A DNA stretch of 64,000 nt, from positions 62,001 to 126,000 of the forward strand of contig RBZT01000588.1 in the NCBI GenBank assembly GCA_003693705.1, read 5' to 3'. Below, in pieces: positions 41,903 through 54,513 of this stretch (the stretch's first letter is position 1; every line of letters starts with the position of its first letter). Under the pieces are notes generated by a model. That model searched no databases, was not told where the DNA came from, and worked only from the letters and a program-made list of their open reading frames with translations. Position numbers and translations under genes: made by a program. This stretch comes from Polymyxa betae A26-41 (Eukaryota > Protista > Endomyxa: Phytomyxea).

Positions 41903-44260
41903 ATGGGATTGTCATCCAATCTGCCGTTCATTCTACGACTTGGCCGGCTGCATATGACCCAGTTTAGTGCACTTACATATATCACTGCTGCAATCGTATC
42001 GTGCGAGATCACCAAAAATACGCTCAAATGGTCTCCGTTCTTAACGGGGTACGCGTTCGTGTTTGCATGTCAAATGGTGGCACATTTTCTCGGCGAATAC
42101 TACGACCAAGCGTCGGATCGTAAGTTATATCTCAATCTGAAAGCTACCGGCAATTAATCGCGTCTTTAAGGTCTAAATATACATGGAAGTCCATTAACAG
42201 GCGGATCAGGAGTGCTGCAAGCTAATGCTATTAGCCCAAAGATACCGCTCTATGTTGGATGGAGCTTCTCTGCGTTTTGCCTGATTTTGATCTGTTTCGT
42301 GCTTCCAAGCAATGCTACGGTCATAGCTTTAGCTATGTTTGCAATCGCCCATCAATATTCGGCCCCACCCTTCGTTTTGAATCACAACGGTTTGGGCGAG
42401 ATTGCGGCTGCTACCGTACAGAATATTCTCCTGCCAGCATTTGCTGCAATGTGCCAATCATCCCAGTTTCACCCACTTTTCGACGGGCATCTTAAGCATC
42501 TAGTCTGGCCATCTGCTTTCATCAAATTCGCTCTATTTATTGTGCTCAATCTTAACGATAGGCGCCCTGATTGGCTTAGCGACAAAACCACTTTGCCCAT
42601 CCTGATTGGAGAGGATCGAGCCATTATTCTTCATACGATATTCATGGCGTCAGGCTATGTATTCGCCTGGAATATAATGCCCTTTTCTGTGATGAAACTG
42701 CTTACAATGGCTTCATCTCCATTGGCGTTCTGGATCGTCCTGCAAATGTGGACAAATAGGCCTTATCGATATGACAGAATTCTCGCTCTGAGTCTTGTAC
42801 ATTGCACATTAGTCATGTGGTCAATCCTTGTTGACTCTATGATGCATCATATCTTACGAACTGGGTCTGTCCACTGGTCGTTCATTATAGTTGCAGTTTT
42901 GGCGTATAAGTTCGCATTGAGCTGCAAGGGCTTTTTGGCCCTTTGGAAGGATGTGAATTTAGTAACCAATGAGACAAGGCCTCCAGTTCTAATCTGTGGA
43001 GGTGGTATCGCTGGCCTTGTTTCCGCTATCGTTCTGCACCGTCTTAGGATCCCATGTGTTATAATCGAACAGAGGGATGAAGAGCATTCATTGAATGGAG
43101 CCGATCTTGCCCTATGGCCATCAGCTGTACAAACTCTTCGTGCACTTGGAGTCAGGGAATCATTCTGGAATGACAGCGCTCGTTGTGTAAATTCCGTTCT
43201 AATGCGGCAAATGGAAAACGCAAAAACCATTCAAGTGATTGATATGAATGCGGTTGTGGATGGAACGCAAGAGAAGTTCAGATTGGTTTCTCGTCAACTG
43301 CTTATGACGGAATTGAAGAAACTTATCCCTACTCAACACCAGGTTTCATACAATACTAAACTGGTTGCTGTCAGCCATGCTGATGCCAGTAATCAAGTGA
43401 CTGCCCATATCGAATCCTCTGATGGAAAAGACACAATTACCAGGGCTATCGTTTGCAAGCTGATCATTGGCGCTGATGGCGTTTACTCCACTGTTCGTCG
43501 TTTGACATTGCCTAATTGCGGGATTTCGGTTAGATATTGTGGCGAAATGTGTTATAGAGGTGTGATCGACTTCAATCAAAGTCAAGATCCTCAAGGCCGG
43601 CTCTTGTTACCTGTATTCAAAAACATTGTGACTGATGTTCCAGAAGACACAATGCTTATTACCTACGGTCAGGGTATTAGATCATCTGTGGGATACCTTG
43701 ATGAAATCAACAAATCGAGGGGATACTGGTGGTTAAAACAAATATCAAAGCAAAAAGAAGAGAGCCCAGATACAGCTGATTGGCCAGTCAACTTGAAGAC
43801 TTTATACGATCAGACTCCCAAAGAATGCCTATACGCGCATGAGATCATCGACAGCAGACCCGCTTCTCGCCGTATAACTTCACATTGCTCAGTTTTAATT
43901 GGGGATGCCGCTCACCCAATCACTCCGAATATGGGTCAAGGAGCCTGCTTGGCAATCGAAGACGCTTTCGTTTTATGCACGAATATTGGGTTTTATTCCG
44001 ATTACGTTGATGGAGACACCGAAGCATGCTATCAATATGAAATTTCAAGAAGAAATCACACTGCAGCAATTGCCCGCTCATCCTACATTCAGAGCAAAGT
44101 TGGCCAACTGTCAAATCCAATCTTGGTCTGGATGAGAAATAATATTTTGTACAATCTGCCACGACGCATTTTAATCAACCAACTTCGAAGTAACAATTTC
44201 GATATCAGTCACCATTTAAACTTGTTTGTTCATCAAAGTGCATTAGCCGAAGCTTGTTAA
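41903..44260 (+). CDS. Fusion of a UbiA/MenA-type prenyltransferase and a class A FAD-dependent monooxygenase; about 768 aa, one intron 42120-42170
   Basis: GEYYDQASD, SPLTGGSGVL, YSAPPFVLNHNGLGE, NLNDRRPD..KTTLPI, about 9 TM helices; then GGGIAGL, IGADGVYSTVR, IGDAAHPITPNMGQGACLAIEDA in the same ORF. Confidence 0.92.
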
Positions 44261-44350: not shown

Positions 44351-46586
44351 TTAGCAATCGTCGAATGTCAGGACTCTCCTGACATTCGGCGTCCCAAGAG
44401 AAAGATCTTTTTGAAAGGTCGAAGCGATGGTTGCCGCTTTAGAAGAAAACTGAGGCGATTCTGAAATCATCGGCCCACTTGAAAACATCAACTTCGCCTC
44501 TCTTTGAGAAGCGAGGGTCTTTGAAAAAGCTCGTGCTGGCGAAGCTTCTACAAGAACTTGTAAGGGCTTGATGGAAGAAGATTTTTCAGCAAGCATAAAA
44601 AAGTTTGAATCCGAGCGTCGGCGTTTTGGATCACGATCAGGAAACGAACGACTCCATTTCACTTGATTGTCAAGGCGGCTTGAAAAGCAGCTGACAGTTC
44701 GTCTGCGCTTTAGGCAACTCTCTTGCGCAACCAGCTCCAGCAAATTCGAATTTGTTTTTAACATCAATAAATTCTTTGAACTTGAACTGGGAGATTCAGG
44801 TAAGCCAGCGTTCACGGCATCTGTAAAAGTCTCGGCTTCAGGCAGGATTACAGTCTGCGATGATATCTCATCATCATCAGCTCTCGAGAGTGAATCAGGA
44901 GGTTCCAAATCCATGTGATCATAAAGTCCCAGTAAAGTTAAAGGAAACTTGACCCCATAGGAGTAAACAAGAATTGTGTTCAAGAAATTTTCCAGTTCCA
45001 TTGAAGCACTGCCGGCGAACATGACCGAAAGTTTTGCAGCATTATCCTGCAAATAAGCAATAGTTCGCTCTTCGAGCGGATCTTGGCTGTCCCGGAATCG
45101 AGCGATCTCAAACGCAACCACCATTTGCAACTGAATGCCGGGTATCGACTCAGATAGATTGGGCTGAGCTGCTAACGCCTTTTCTAAAGATTCAGCCATC
45201 TGATGCTGGCTTTCCCGCTTATCCAGAGTTGACTGTTGCATTCTATTGATGTTTCGAATCTCTGATGGAGCATCCACTATATCTTTCCTTTCATCCAGTA
45301 TCTGCTTGAAGAAGCTCGAAAGCGCAGCAATAGGAGAATTATCTTCGAATCCAGCGACTGGCCTATCTAACCCTTGCTCTTTACTTTGACGCAAAGCGTG
45401 AAGGCGTACAGAAATGTCATCGCGTTCGCGTCCGACTGTTACATAATCTGATTCAATCACGGCATCGCAAGAGACGGAATCCAGATCGGAGAGAAACTCG
45501 CCCCGGAAATTGAAAGTCTCATCATAAACTCTGGGATTGTGAACAGCGCTTGGAAGCAGATCAAATCGTTGCAATTTCGATATAATATCGTTATGCACAT
45601 CCACGTCGATTTTTAATACGAAGAAAACGAGATCTAAGTCGTTGTGTTAGAGTGGTATTTCTAGATCGCAACAGGCCCGAAAAGAAATTCCCTACCTTTG
45701 ATAGGAAATAATATACCACAAAGATTATCAAACTGCACAACCGCAACAAGATCACGTATGTAAAGATTGCATAAGCTGGGATGAAGTTTTCTTAGAGATA
45801 TCCACGCTGCCGATGAATCCAGTTCTGCATCTCCAGTAATTAAGGCTCTACGGCAATCTCGAACATTAACTGCATAGCGAATGTCGACTCTGCTTTTAAT
45901 GTTATGAGTCCGGATGGATATTTGGGAGCAATCCGGGAACATCAAGGTAGATTTGAAAATATTGACTGTGTTCGGGGGTGCAATTCCTAATGTCTCGGGC
46001 CTAAACACAGTAAGGTGTGTTTCGACCTCATCAGGAGCGATCAACGATCCATTGGACTTCAGCAAAGTTCTGCTGAATGCCAGCGTCGCAGATTTAGAAG
46101 GGTTCGGTGACAAATCCACCCAAATCAAGCGCGAATTCTTCAAGCTTAGAAGAGCAATTCGAAGAGCTCTTGCACATGCAGTAGACAGCGCTGACCTTGG
46201 CGCCGGCCCAAATATGACTACATCGGAATATGAAGGAGTAAGCAACTTGGGCAAATTGTTTAGAAGATCTGTAAATTCCAGCATCATTGGGAGAGCTATA
46301 ATGTGAGCAACGCAGAATGTAAAGCATTACTGAAGACTCAACGAAAAAAGGGCATACTTAACAAATCTGGGGACGAACGATCTTTTGATATTCGTCTCGA
46401 CCAGTCAGAGGTAAATTGTCTCCAAGCAGTGGCCCAACCCGATTCCGAACGTTTCCGATGGGCCCGACCCAAGCTCGTCCAAATCAGAAACGAACAGGGT
46501 CTCTTCTGAGGCAGAAGCGCTTCTAGGATTCGGATCGCATCTTGGCCCGGCAGGAACTGATCAAACCCGATCAGCAGCGACGACAT
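44351..46586 (-). CDS. Treslin/TICRR (Sld3)-like replication-initiation factor
   Basis: QLQMVVAFEI...LENFLNTILVYSY..KFPLTLLGLYDHMDL resembles the Sld3-Treslin domain; paired CDK-like sites VEASP and ISESP; vWA-like N-terminus. Confidence 0.65.
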
Positions 46587-49879: not shown

Positions 49880-50136
49880 GCCGCCAACGTCTGTCGTTGG
49901 TAGTCGTCGTCTCTGCTAAATCATTTACATAATGTTATATGTGGTCAGTATGGGCTGTATGGCCCACTGTCATTGATTGTTTTTTTTTTGCAAAAAAGTG
50001 TAAAAATGTGAATAGTTGGCGATGAATCAACCTGTTGAAATTCTCGAACTTTTTTGGGGTTCGTTCTAGTCTTCCAGTCCATACACTCCATCGAGCCACA
50101 AATTTGATTCGGAGCGCTTTCGGCCTTAGAGGAAAG

Positions 50137-50828
50137 ATGCCGTCCAGGCGTACGCTGGCGATCGTCTGGGCCGCTGCTGGACCCGCCCTGGCACTATTCG
50201 TCGTAATGATCACGTCCAGTTCGGCGTCGTCGCCTTCGCAGCTGCAATGCCAATCAGGCGGTATGAAATCGGTCTTCGTCGTCAATGTCGACAACCCACA
50301 GATCAAGACGATGTTGGAGACCTCGATCTTGAAGACGAAACTGAAGGCGTACGTTGTTCTTCCCATCACCATCGAACCAATCCTGACCTGCTTAGATATC
50401 TGCCAAAGGACCAATACATGGTATGTCTAACAGGAGATCAGCTGGGTCAGATTCAAGCACAGAATATTGGGGTCACCCCATTACACCTTGATAGACGTCT
50501 ATCACCAGGTCTATCTGGGGATTCTGCCACTCCAGGGACACAGCTCATCGCTGAACTCTGCGATAACGACGATCGCGATCTCGCCGACCTCGTCCAGCGT
50601 CTTCGACCTCAGCTCGCCGATCTCCAGGTCGCCCTCGACCCGGTCTCCGCCAAACGTCTCAAGATCACCCTGAACGGTAACGCTCAGGTCGTACCCGCTC
50701 CCGTCCCGTTGTCTGATTCACTGGGGTGGGCAGGTACGACGCCGCCGGTTCAGGTCGCCCGCAGCCTCATCGATCTGCTCTGCGAGATCGTCTGGGTCGA
50801 GCCCAAAGGCCGGATCGTCCTGCATTAG
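50137..50828 (+). CDS. Secreted or signal-anchored protein resembling a free-standing subtilase (KP-43/TagC-type) propeptide; about 195 aa
   Basis: Hydrophobic N-terminus; introns 50349-50395 and 50677-50733; AYLPKDQYMV and terminal CEIVWVEPKGRIVLH*. Confidence 0.5.
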
Positions 50829-50917
50829 GGTTGGAGGTGGCACCCGCGAGCAGCAGCCATGGGGGACATACTGGCCCCCGTCGCTTTGTCCCATAATAAT
50901 AACATTGTAGTATTAAA

Positions 50918-52169
50918 TTAATAGAGGCGAATGGGGATCCGTTCCACCATGTACTGGCCCGTGACGAAATGGACGCGCAGCTCGACTTCGAATGCGATCT
51001 GCGAATGGCAAGGGTTAGGGTATTAGGGTTTTAGGGGGTGGTTGGGCATCTCACAGCGAACTCGTCATGGGTTATGCTTGGACATGTCTTCAATCGTGGC
51101 CATGGCATCTGTATAGGTATAGGTAGATTACGGGCGACATTTCCCACCGCCACCTCCATCGTATGAACTTCCGACTTGTCGCTTAACGCTCCTTCGCTGT
51201 ATTCTGCCGCCCCGGGGGGCGTTAGTTCCATCGGACTACTCGGGGACGTGCCGCGCTTGCTTACCGCATGTCTCGATCCGATTCAGCGTCAACGTGATCG
51301 CTCTGATCTGTTTCGTGGATCGTGTGATCACCACCTCCCCGCTCAGCGCTTCCGCCTCAATCGAACACAACGTATTGTCAATGGCGCCCTCCAGATCGAT
51401 CTCCAGGTCGATCTGCGCTTCGTTCTCGCCTGACTGCGTCGTCAGCGTGCCGTACTGGCTCATGGGGGGGTGCCGCCCTTACCCTGACTCTGGCAGTAAC
51501 CGTGTGATCGGAAGGGCGATCGGGCCGGACGACATTCGGACGGCGGTCCGTACGCTGCCACGACGAACTCGCGCGTCGCTTTCGGCGTCGATGGCAGGAA
51601 ACGGCGTCCTGTATAGACCGAGAGCGCGTATTGGACAGCGATCAGTTTGCCTTTGTACGAGGAGATCAGGCGTTGGCCGTCGTCACTGTCGTCCAGCACG
51701 AACTCAAACGGGTATTCGACCTGCGTCGTACTGGTCGCTGCGGACGAAACGATTCAGCGTCGTTCGATCCAAATAATAATCATTGTGAAATCGATGCAAT
51801 GGAGAGACGATATTTGAACATAAATATTTTCAAAAAATCTGTGAAATGCTTTCAAAAAAGTTTGTGAAACTGTTGCAAAAAAGCGGAATCCTGAATGTCA
51901 ATTTGATACGAAATCTTCGTACATGGTGCTGGGAGCAGATTGAGCGATTTATTGAGGACCGAGATGGGTTTCAGCGACGAATAGAACGCCTCGAACAGTC
52001 CCACAGATTTGGGCGACAGGTTCAGGTAGACGGCGCCCTCGGCCTGAAGGCGGATCTGGGCCGGGGCCGCCGCCGCCGTGGTCGGCCACACGACCCGGCC
52101 CCGGACTCGATCGCCCGGATGAAACGCCGCCCGATCTCCAACCAGCTCGATCGCCACACCACCATTCAT
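50918..52169 (-). CDS. VPS26C: Retriever complex subunit VPS26C (DSCR3)
   Basis: EGAVYLNLSPKSVGLFEAFYSSLKPI, YPFEF, LNRIETCG, EVAVGNVARNLPIPI.M.WPRL.TCPS, FEV. Confidence 0.92.
51012..51046 (+). repeat. Telomere-like G-rich array inside the last VPS26C intron
   Basis: agggttagggtattagggttttagggggtggttggg. Confidence 0.8.
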
Positions 52170-52252
52170 CGTCGTCGAGAATAACGTCACAGACTACGAC
52201 GATCGCCTTCGTCGAGCATCATGACTCACGGGGCGGCGCCATTTTCCGAACG

Positions 52253-53140
52253 ATGTTGTTGCTGGTTCTGTTGGGCGCTACAGCGGCGGCGTGGCGATCC
52301 GACCTGCAGCTGACGTTGGACGAGGCCGACACGCTCCGGTTCGCGATCCGTCTCCAGGTCGGCGGCCACGACGTCGCCGTCGAGCTCGATACCGGCTCGA
52401 GCAGGACCTGGATACGTTCGTCGTCATCTCCTCCGACGACGACGACGCCCTTCTCGATCGCGTATCGCGACGGATCCAGCGCGACGGGTGTCGTGACCAC
52501 CGATCTGGTCCAGTTCGGAGCAGGGGCGCCGCCCCGTCTCATGACCTTCGGTCTGGTCAATGAAACCAACATCGACGGCGACGGCGTCGTCGGCCTGCGA
52601 CCGCCGCAGCTCGCCGCGATCGTGGCCGGCGCCGATCAACCTGCGGCGACGTTCATGTTCGCCGAACGACAGGTGCGGTTGGGGACGACGCCGGACGACC
52701 TCGACTGGGTCGGCAGCAGTCCCGATCGATGGACGATCGTGGCCGAGGCGGTCCGATTCGGGGCCGTGGCGGCGTCCGCCGCGCGCGTGCGCGTCGACAC
52801 GGGCGCCGCCATCGTCGGCGTCCCGGACGCGTTCTTCGCACAGCTGTGCGGCGTCCTGGGCGCCGACCCGAACGGGTTCGTGTGCGATTGCGAACGACGA
52901 CGGCGTTGGTGGCCTCCGCTTCAGATCGTGTTCGGTCCGGGTCGGCGTCTGACGTACCGGCCCGCGGCCTGGACGCGGCCCGTGCAGGACCGCCCCGGAA
53001 TGTGTCAGATCGTGTTCAGGTCGGCCGGTGATGATTGGATTCTGGGCGTCCCGCTGCTCATGCAGCAGACAGTGTCGTTCCGTGTTCAACGTCCAGATCA
53101 CGTTCAGATCGGATTCCCGTTAACATCGCTCATTGGATAA
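52253..53140 (+). CDS. Secreted pepsin-family (A1) aspartic protease; intronless, very GC-rich
   Basis: Signal peptide, ELDTGSSRTW, FSIAYRDGS, DGVVGL, RVDTGAA, WILGVPLL. Confidence 0.9.
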   Translation: MLLLVLLGATAAAWRSDLQLTLDEADTLRFAIRLQVGGHDVAVELDTGSSRTWIRSSSSPPTTTTPFSIAYRDGSSATGVVTTDLVQFGAGAPPRLMTFGLVNETNIDGDGVVGLRPPQLAAIVAGADQPAATFMFAERQVRLGTTPDDLDWVGSSPDRWTIVAEAVRFGAVAASAARVRVDTGAAIVGVPDAFFAQLCGVLGADPNGFVCDCERRRRWWPPLQIVFGPGRRLTYRPAAWTRPVQDRPGMCQIVFRSAGDDWILGVPLLMQQTVSFRVQRPDHVQIGFPLTSLIG

Positions 53141-53394
53141 TCGCGCCTCTTTGTTGAGATATATTCGCGATCGGGTATTTACTTTCCGGGGGGTCGCCCT
53201 GTTCATGGCCCTGATCTGGCCAATAAACTTCACTATTTCTTAACATTGTCTAACAGAACGGATTTGGATTCGCCATGGCTGCTGTTGCGATAATTTATCG
53301 TTTGTTGGGACGACAACAATTCGTCTATTCCATCTGGGGTCTAAAACCAATAATTCGGACAGTACCGCCAGGCTGCGTTTAGCTGATGATCATC

Positions 53395-53772
53395 GAAACC
53401 CTAACCCTAACCAACGCCTTGCTGGTCTCTGTGATGTTCACTACCCCTAGTTATCATGCTCTATCAACCTTCACTGTTATCTTGAGAGCGTCGACATCAC
53501 TAAATGCCAAATTCTGATGAGCGATATCTTCGTATATGTCCAGATCTGTGTATCATCAAGATCTCGTTATAAAACAGCTATTGGTTAGGGTTTGGTATCG
53601 AGACAATCTCTTAGCTCGAGCTAAACCCACGTCATGGGATGATCGCTGTCACTGACAAATGCAAAAGGTGCCGAAGCGGCGACAACAAGACAGTATTGGA
53701 ACACAGATATTCAGTTCTAGTGTCGGGGTTTAGGGTTTCCTGCATATCGCCAATCTAGTTTTGGGTTTTAGG
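53395..53772. repeat. Dispersed telomere/telo-box-like motifs in an intergenic gap
   Basis: aaaccctaaccctaacc (about 53396), ggttagggttt (about 53583), gggtttagggttt (about 53726), ttttgggttttagg (about 53760). Confidence 0.6.
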
Positions 53773-54513
53773 TGTCGTGCTGGGTTCATGACTCGGATCT
53801 CTGTCATCGTGATTCAATTGAATCCGCCTCTTTATTCTGCAACTAAATCTATGTCTGATTGTAGGATTTAAAGGCTGTAAACCCTTCCATATAATAAGCT
53901 CCAACATCTCGTAACTGATGATAAAGGCAGCTGAATCAAACGTTCCTTCTTGTTGTTTTCATATCTTGGCGATCCATTGAACAGTTAGTGTGGAAAACGA
54001 CAAAAGAAGGATCAGATGTCGATGGATATTCAGCGAGTTGGATTTTCAGTCCTGCTCCAAAAAATCCCTTAAAAACCTCAAATCTCAACAATGACGAACT
54101 AATTAATTCCTTGGTAATCAATGATCAATATCACGACGTCATATTCCAAAATCCCAAACCCGTTGAATAATAACAAATGTCCAGTTCCCAATAGATTCGT
54201 TAATAAACCAATCCTGAATTCATTATTATACATCTAGAGCCCATCACCCCATCACCCCATCACCCCATTGATAATGTCGAATATATCCCGAGGTTGTAGT
54301 CAGTCAGTATTACGGAGTCTCATAGCCTACAATAGGCCATTTATATGGGATTTATTGATCAAATCAGAAACCTGAATATAGCTGCATCTAACAGTCATGC
54401 AAGAATGGCCAAGACATTGAATCAGTTAGGTAAATGGACAATAAATTTATATAAAATATGAAGAGCTGAGAAAGGCGCTCAAGAATTGCAGTATTGAGAG
54501 AAGTGTGATACAT

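Follow-up and report, generated by a model that had tools for sequence, protein, structure and literature searches.

A UbiA prenyltransferase-like domain fused to a flavin monooxygenase in Polymyxa betae: candidate core of a four-enzyme eukaryotic module

The gene described here, located in a 64,000-nucleotide stretch of contig RBZT01000588.1 of Polymyxa betae A26-41 (hereafter the window), encodes a UbiA-superfamily membrane domain and a complete class A FAD monooxygenase (FMO) within one polypeptide. Its relatives form a eukaryotic fusion family that is probably old and whose genes recurrently lie beside those for EboF, an atypical short-chain dehydrogenase/reductase (SDR) and an ankyrin-JmjC oxygenase. 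Weighing the sequence comparisons, we assign a probability of about 0.6 to a model in which the fusion prenylates and oxygenates a hydroxy-aromatic compound as the core of a four-enzyme module with these three partners. A prenyl-aromatic product, which an earlier note drawn from this DNA had proposed, remains the likeliest reading of the comparisons. A literature search that lay largely outside subscription journals gave no described function for a protein of this architecture, as that note had anticipated, and nothing relevant on the P. betae accession, the fusion or the cluster; the type of chemistry is already known, but there appears to be no description of the fusion family, of its altered metal site or of the cross-supergroup module.

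Gene structure and the two halves of the protein

The fusion gene runs on the plus strand from an ATG at 41903 to a stop at 44260, with the following features.

41903..42119, +, exon 1: N-terminal UbiA part, including the conserved Arg (RLHMT) and Asp-rich motif 1
42092..42118, +, first Asp-rich motif, GEYYDxxxD: Gly at the position of the Mg-binding Asn (AfUbiA N68, UBIAD1 N102)
42120..42170, +, intron of 51 nt, GT-AG (GTAAGT...TTTAAG): contains an in-frame stop; missing from the Plasmodiophora orthologue
42171..44260, +, exon 2: remaining UbiA domain, linker and entire monooxygenase in a single open frame
42356..42400, +, YSAPP...LNH..GE segment: catalytic Tyr retained, Asn at the AfUbiA K146 / UBIAD1 K181 position
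42548..42595, +, second Asp-rich motif, NxxDxxxD...KxTL: invariant across the family alignment
42983..44074, +, class A FAD monooxygenase domain (PF01494, Pfam)
42998..43015, +, GxGxxG FAD-binding motif
43097..43120, +, family signature GADLALWP: the Asp is mostly Gly in bacterial relatives
43475..43480, +, DG motif
43901..43942, +, GD motif (GDAAHPxTPNxGQG)

Both the DNA and Pfam agree with the earlier description of a 51-nt intron followed by one frame, open from 42173 to the stop, that carries the UbiA domain into the FMO, and each of the motifs then listed (GxGxxG, DG, GD, GGSGVL, YSAPP..GLGE, KTTL and GEYYDxxxD) was found as claimed. The exons were searched one by one, and the intronless Plasmodiophora brassicae orthologue PBRA_006090 (766 aa, 48% identical) served as a full-length stand-in. 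In Pfam, exon 2 alone matched UbiA at residues 15-200 (E 3e-8, 33.5 bits) and FAD_binding_3 at residues 271-634 (E 1e-22); the UbiA score falls just below the 34.2-bit cut-off because exon 1 is absent from the query. The alignment of the Plasmodiophora orthologue spans both exons and the splice junction, and since this orthologue lacks the intron, it independently supports the splice. The fusion is real and forms a single polypeptide, with the splice predicted from the DNA and the orthologue, and the 27-Mb P. betae assembly holds one copy of the gene. Curated-model, PDB and fold matches bear out the assignment of a MenA/UBIAD1-like half and a class A monooxygenase half to the same chain. The adjoining gene downstream (44351-45604, minus strand) has a weak match to Treslin STD (Pfam, E 0.014), and GC content in the window rises to 0.54-0.57 at about 50000-54000 from about 0.45 elsewhere.

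The UbiA half is predicted to adopt the multi-helix intramembrane fold of its superfamily. An AlphaFold2 model of this half of the Plasmodiophora orthologue (pLDDT 94.6) has DGGGPS, UBIAD1, AfUbiA and ApUbiA as its top Foldseek matches, with TM scores of 0.63-0.66 against the known structures. The model of the complete orthologue (pLDDT 95.1, pTM 0.93) hints at a fixed arrangement of the two domains, whereas the ESM Atlas model has a pTM of 0.71. By sequence, the best PDB match of this half is UBIAD1, and 34-35 of 37 family members match curated MenA models, at a best score of about 61 bits against cut-offs of 102-555.

Mapped onto AfUbiA through the UBIAD1 alignment, the conserved Arg, the Tyr, the motif-1 Asp residues and motif 2 are kept. 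Near-invariant positions in the family alignment comprise motif 2, the Tyr, TGG and the His, Glu, Asp and Asp of motif 1, and in alignment A4 the N, D, D, K and T of the second Asp-rich motif and the TM4 Tyr are invariant. Two ligand-binding positions differ throughout the family: the equivalent of AfUbiA N68 is Gly, which aligns with UBIAD1 position 102 and is itself nearly invariant, and the equivalent of K146 is Asn. The pattern HxxG(E/D)xxDxxxD occurs in 37 of 39 pattern-selected members in place of NDxxDxxxD with its Mg-binding Asn, and the unusual first motif pointed out in the earlier note is present as a trait of the whole family rather than as a peculiarity of the P. betae copy. Alanine mutants of AfUbiA at N68 and at K146 abolish GPP binding, and the Asn mutant loses MenA activity (PMC4106721). 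Bacterial UbiA relatives retain Asn followed by Glu at motif 1, and the Lys-to-Asn change is also found in the Streptomyces clavuligerus relative, which keeps the motif-1 Asn. The metal site of the fusion is thus remodelled, with the Glu possibly standing in for the lost ligand. Given the Gly at the Mg-binding Asn position family-wide, prenyl transfer by the UbiA half is a candidate activity.

The closest bacterial UbiA proteins are plasmid-borne in Ca. Megaera and S. clavuligerus and belong to a MenA-like subfamily that is uncharacterised; their neighbourhoods had no FMO (a sugar epimerase and transposases in Megaera, a nearby P450 in S. clavuligerus). The nearest of them (L024:9836-10897) lies on a Ca. 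Megaera plasmid that also bears conjugative genes. Ca. Megaera lives as an endosymbiont in protists and algae, and this plasmid is a possible transfer route. Among ESM Atlas clusters, prokaryotic MenA-like proteins occur fused to flavodoxin-like reductase, luciferase-like, PNPOx or PAS domains, and the UbiA type of the fusion is frequently joined to flavin or sensor domains.

The FMO half has the GxGxxG, DG and GD motifs and the PHBH-type fold of class A FAD monooxygenases. Its fold matches HpxO, TrlE, NicC and hydroxybenzoate hydroxylases (TM about 0.8 by target), and its closest solved relatives, NicC, HpxO and TrlE, have N-heteroaromatics or phenolics as substrates. With these enzymes and with the salicylate and 3-hydroxybenzoate hydroxylases and VibMO1 (PRK06753 group) it shares the fold and the three FAD motifs, but it is only about 20-25% identical to characterised enzymes, misses all cut-offs, carries the family-specific Asp of GADLxLWP and falls in a eukaryotic clade of its own. 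Orthology with COQ6/UbiH or KMO was not found, scores being low and COQ6-like and KMO-like genes being encoded separately in P. betae.

Distribution and age of the fusion family

A full HMMER scan yielded 54 proteins at E below 1e-30, and about 30 full-length fused relatives were gathered. Named carriers are Plasmodiophora, Planoprotostelium, Rhodosorus, Purpureofilum, Choristocarpus, Tribonema, Blastocladiella, Catenaria, Paraphysoderma, Sorochytrium and Hyaloraphidium; the carrier groups comprise plasmodiophorids, an amoebozoan, red, brown and yellow-green algae, zoosporic fungi and environmental protists, and numerous members from sequencing runs probably belong, judging by the trees, near red algae or Planoprotostelium. 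A Rhodosorus transcript encodes a complete fusion ORF. Public databases label the family proteins as hypothetical or FAD-binding proteins.

Separate trees were built for the two halves, a check that the earlier note had proposed. The FMO halves form a single eukaryotic clade apart from their bacterial relatives (support 100), and the intact UbiA halves group as well (85/92, not starred). The P. betae protein is sister to the Plasmodiophora protein in both trees, which marks its host as a plasmodiophorid, the same subgroups and main clades recur in both, and the pairwise distances of the two halves correlate (rho 0.39, 0/5000 permutations, 29 sequences). Because the half trees are congruent and their distances correlated, the fusion must have arisen once, long ago; its later history was either inheritance with many losses or passage between eukaryotes, both being compatible with these unrooted trees. 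The suggestion of a fairly recent acquisition or fusion does not hold, as the fusion is common to Rhizaria, Amoebozoa, Rhodophyta, Ochrophyta and zoosporic fungi and the Plasmodiophora copy is intronless; its distribution and long separate branches rule out a recent fusion or a recent transfer. No prokaryotic copy of the fusion emerged from two pattern scans of 185,579 genomes, both of low sensitivity, and plasmid, phage and viral searches returned only distant single-domain matches.

Two kinds of derived protein accompany the family. Red-algal paralogues in Rhodosorus (P0025) and Purpureofilum (P0026) have a degenerate UbiA half that has lost its Asp motifs and an intact FMO half. A fungal FMO-only offshoot (L022:5001-10548, P0040, P0047, P0051, P0053), with a long unannotated C-terminal part and a tandem arrangement in GCA_027604645, nests among blastoclad sequences in the FMO tree.

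Partner genes and their linkage

Between one and three of the same partners (EboF, the atypical SDR, the ankyrin-JmjC oxygenase) lie beside the fusion at six of the 11 genomic loci.

Plasmodiophora brassicae: PF01663 protein, an EboF homologue, directly upstream of the fusion
Rhodosorus: JmjC-fusion-eboF as consecutive called genes
Contig L029, freshwater metagenome: eboF-SDR-JmjC(ankyrin)-fusion within 6.5 kb
Choristocarpus: fusion-SDR (same SDR)
Contig L093: FMO part-SDR (same SDR)
SRR25569769 Logan contig: Cupin_8, PF01663, second FMO and fusion, known from Pfam labels alone

Random adjacency would be expected at about 1e-3 per locus, a figure to be read with the shared ancestry of the loci, which are not independent trials. 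At five of the 11 loci (Planoprotostelium, Catenaria, L031, L064 and the P. betae window) no partner was found nearby, which concerns local linkage only. The P. betae genome has all three partners, dispersed as follows.

C621:188003-189631 (L034:5004-6632), -, eboF: 57%, intron-containing, 82 kb from the fusion on the same contig
C758:8168-9545, SDR: 51-62%
C613:74394-75630, ankyrin-JmjC oxygenase: 35-58%, HxD..H kept

Linkage is therefore a feature of distant genomes and not of P. betae, in which eboF lies about 62 kb past the end of the window, adjoining an LSM12-like gene (PF09793) and near a G-alpha gene. In P. brassicae the order is eboF-fusion-LSM12, with the same neighbours as P. betae eboF; most simply, the fusion left the eboF/LSM12 locus in P. 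betae and came to lie 82 kb away. The fusion itself stands as the earlier note described it; the "one-gene pathway" inferred there is probably too narrow, since three partner genes recur alongside.

All three SDR homologues inspected have DxxxK instead of the usual YxxxK. The EboF of the module matches that of bacterial ebo operons at 37-44%, and bacterial FMO loci gave no match to the partner genes. Occurrence of eboF without other ebo genes has been described in florideophytes, Stylonematophyceae, PX-clade ochrophytes, Plasmodiophora and an amoebozoan, with the role of the eukaryotic gene left open (Yurchenko et al., PMC5133447). The fusion has the same range of carriers, and the linkage offers a testable answer to this published question.

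Candidate chemistry and competing explanations

In the model that we favour, the UbiA half would add a farnesyl, geranylgeranyl or polyprenyl chain to an electron-rich hydroxy-(hetero)aromatic acceptor, and the tethered FMO would work at the membrane surface, hydroxylating or epoxidising either ring or chain. EboF would work upstream, acting on a phosphorylated precursor or building the ring, and the SDR and JmjC enzyme would tailor the product, which may be a meroterpenoid or a quinone-like small molecule.

Several known systems resemble parts of this scheme. In the thallusin pathway eboB, C, E and F are each required and EboC farnesylates hydroxyquinolines (bioRxiv 10.64898/2026.05.21.724671); the module shares EboF with it and likewise pairs EboF with an enzyme of the UbiA superfamily, but has an FMO, an SDR and a JmjC enzyme in place of other ebo components. 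Its UbiA half is not EboC: the family profile gives the Megaera protein 176 bits, and two EboC proteins only -0.1 and -1.4 bits. As EboC is thus excluded and one query for EboE found nothing in P. betae, the thallusin pathway appears to be absent there, pointing to a different pathway that reuses EboF. Aurachin biosynthesis combines a membrane-bound prenyltransferase with an FMO and a reductase, and in the Stigmatella set (AuaA, AuaG/AuaJ, AuaH, AuaF) a second oxygenase also acts on the prenylated ring (PMC10295502); the bacterial proteins are separate and depend on a type II PKS for their substrate, with no fusion and no EboF, and the likeness drawn here is one of logic. Fungal meroterpenoid clusters, with a UbiA prenyltransferase, an FMO epoxidase and a Pyr4/PaxB cyclase, follow a similar prenylate-then-oxygenate logic but use separate genes. 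A search of the P. betae genome for a Pyr4-family cyclase, run without a positive control, gave no match, and no cyclase occurs among the called neighbours.

It is unlikely, in our judgement, that the UbiA half does not prenylate at all and instead serves as a membrane anchor or prenyl-lipid binder for the FMO, or ionises a prenyl diphosphate for cyclisation or hydrolysis, giving an oxidised terpenoid. UbiA-type terpene cyclases are known, and both the Gly at the Mg-binding Asn and the Asn at the diphosphate-binding Lys, the degenerate-UbiA paralogues and the FMO-only fungal offshoot favour such a role, but the near-invariance of motif 2, Tyr, TGG and the His/Glu/Asp/Asp of motif 1 exceeds what an anchor would need, the neighbouring Glu could take over from the missing ligand, and the Lys-to-Asn change is also seen in one bacterial relative whose motif-1 Asn is intact. 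A role in primary metabolism, as a source of an alternative electron carrier or antioxidant resembling menaquinone, rhodoquinone or a polyprenylquinol, for instance at low oxygen or in resting stages, seems improbable. The half resembles MenA/UBIAD1 in its best curated models, PDB match, fold, motif 2 and catalytic Tyr, the FMO fold includes quinol-making para-hydroxylases, fusions to flavin redox domains occur among the bacterial relatives of this UbiA type, and P. betae encodes chorismate synthase. Against this, the half scores far under every MenA cut-off, has Gly for Asn and Asn for Lys, and is fused to an FMO; an exon-wise search of the draft genome, which cannot prove absence, returned for MenB only a 25.6-bit crotonase-like fragment; COQ2, COX10 and COQ6 are separate genes, COQ2 and COX10 being the only UbiA matches besides the fusion; and the family is patchily distributed. 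We know of no quinone pathway that includes the EboF, SDR and JmjC partners.

The earlier note had raised the modification of a host phenolic. A role for the enzyme in altering or detoxifying phenolics of the parasite's host, salicylate for instance, fits the closeness of the P. betae genome to Plasmodiophora and the resemblance of the FMO to salicylate and hydroxybenzoate hydroxylases. We regard it as very improbable, given that the carriers are mostly free-living algae, amoebae and saprobes and that the protein looks integral-membrane rather than secreted. The P. betae gene model was read from DNA alone, which leaves room for two separate genes or an assembly artefact; the chance of either is close to negligible, since a single open frame crosses the junction and about 30 full-length fused relatives exist, among them the transcript-derived Rhodosorus ORF.

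Returning to prenylation followed or accompanied by oxygenation, the acceptor that we tentatively favour by analogy with aurachins and thallusin is a hydroxyquinoline or another ring derived from tryptophan or kynurenine. One close bacterial SDR belongs to a tryptophan-dioxygenase operon, but another is found in a cluster with an aromatic amino acid lyase, which makes the quinoline hint weak. Genes for Trp dioxygenase and KMO-like and kynureninase-like proteins are present in P. betae; kynurenine genes are common housekeeping genes. On a broader and more speculative view, which we hold to be doubtful as a whole, the module would be a eukaryotic pathway of four genes, either old or spread laterally, that was assembled from bacterial parts and that makes, in plasmodiophorid parasites, zoosporic fungi, amoebae and red and brown algae, a thallusin- or aurachin-like prenylated hydroxyquinoline acting as an endogenous morphogen, metal chelator or respiratory inhibitor, using a UbiA enzyme with a new metal site and accounting for the orphan eukaryotic eboF. 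Metabolic gene clusters conserved over eukaryotic supergroups are rare, and for red algae, brown algae and plasmodiophorids the map from gene to secondary metabolite is poor. If the UbiA half is active, the first-motif Asn would be dispensable; a pathway retained by obligate plant parasites with reduced metabolism could be a control target; and the four named enzymes can be co-expressed to find the product.

Some bacterial gene neighbourhoods touch on these components. Streptomyces plasmids carrying an FMO and eboF proved to hold an NRPS cluster adjoining an ordinary ebo operon, a coincidental association. One close bacterial SDR belongs to a tryptophan-dioxygenase operon on the Ralstonia solanacearum megaplasmid (L060:10217-16677), which encodes a VOC protein, Trp dioxygenase, an FAD enzyme, a class V PLP enzyme, the DxxxK-type SDR and a VioD/GntC-like PLP enzyme; no paper on this operon was found, and the identification of its FMO and class V PLP enzyme as KMO and kynureninase was not confirmed. 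The second close bacterial SDR, also of the DxxxK type, is encoded on an S. clavuligerus megaplasmid (L061:8737-25166), in a cluster with the aromatic amino acid lyase, two adenylation-SDR fusions, an O-methyltransferase and a PLP decarboxylase.
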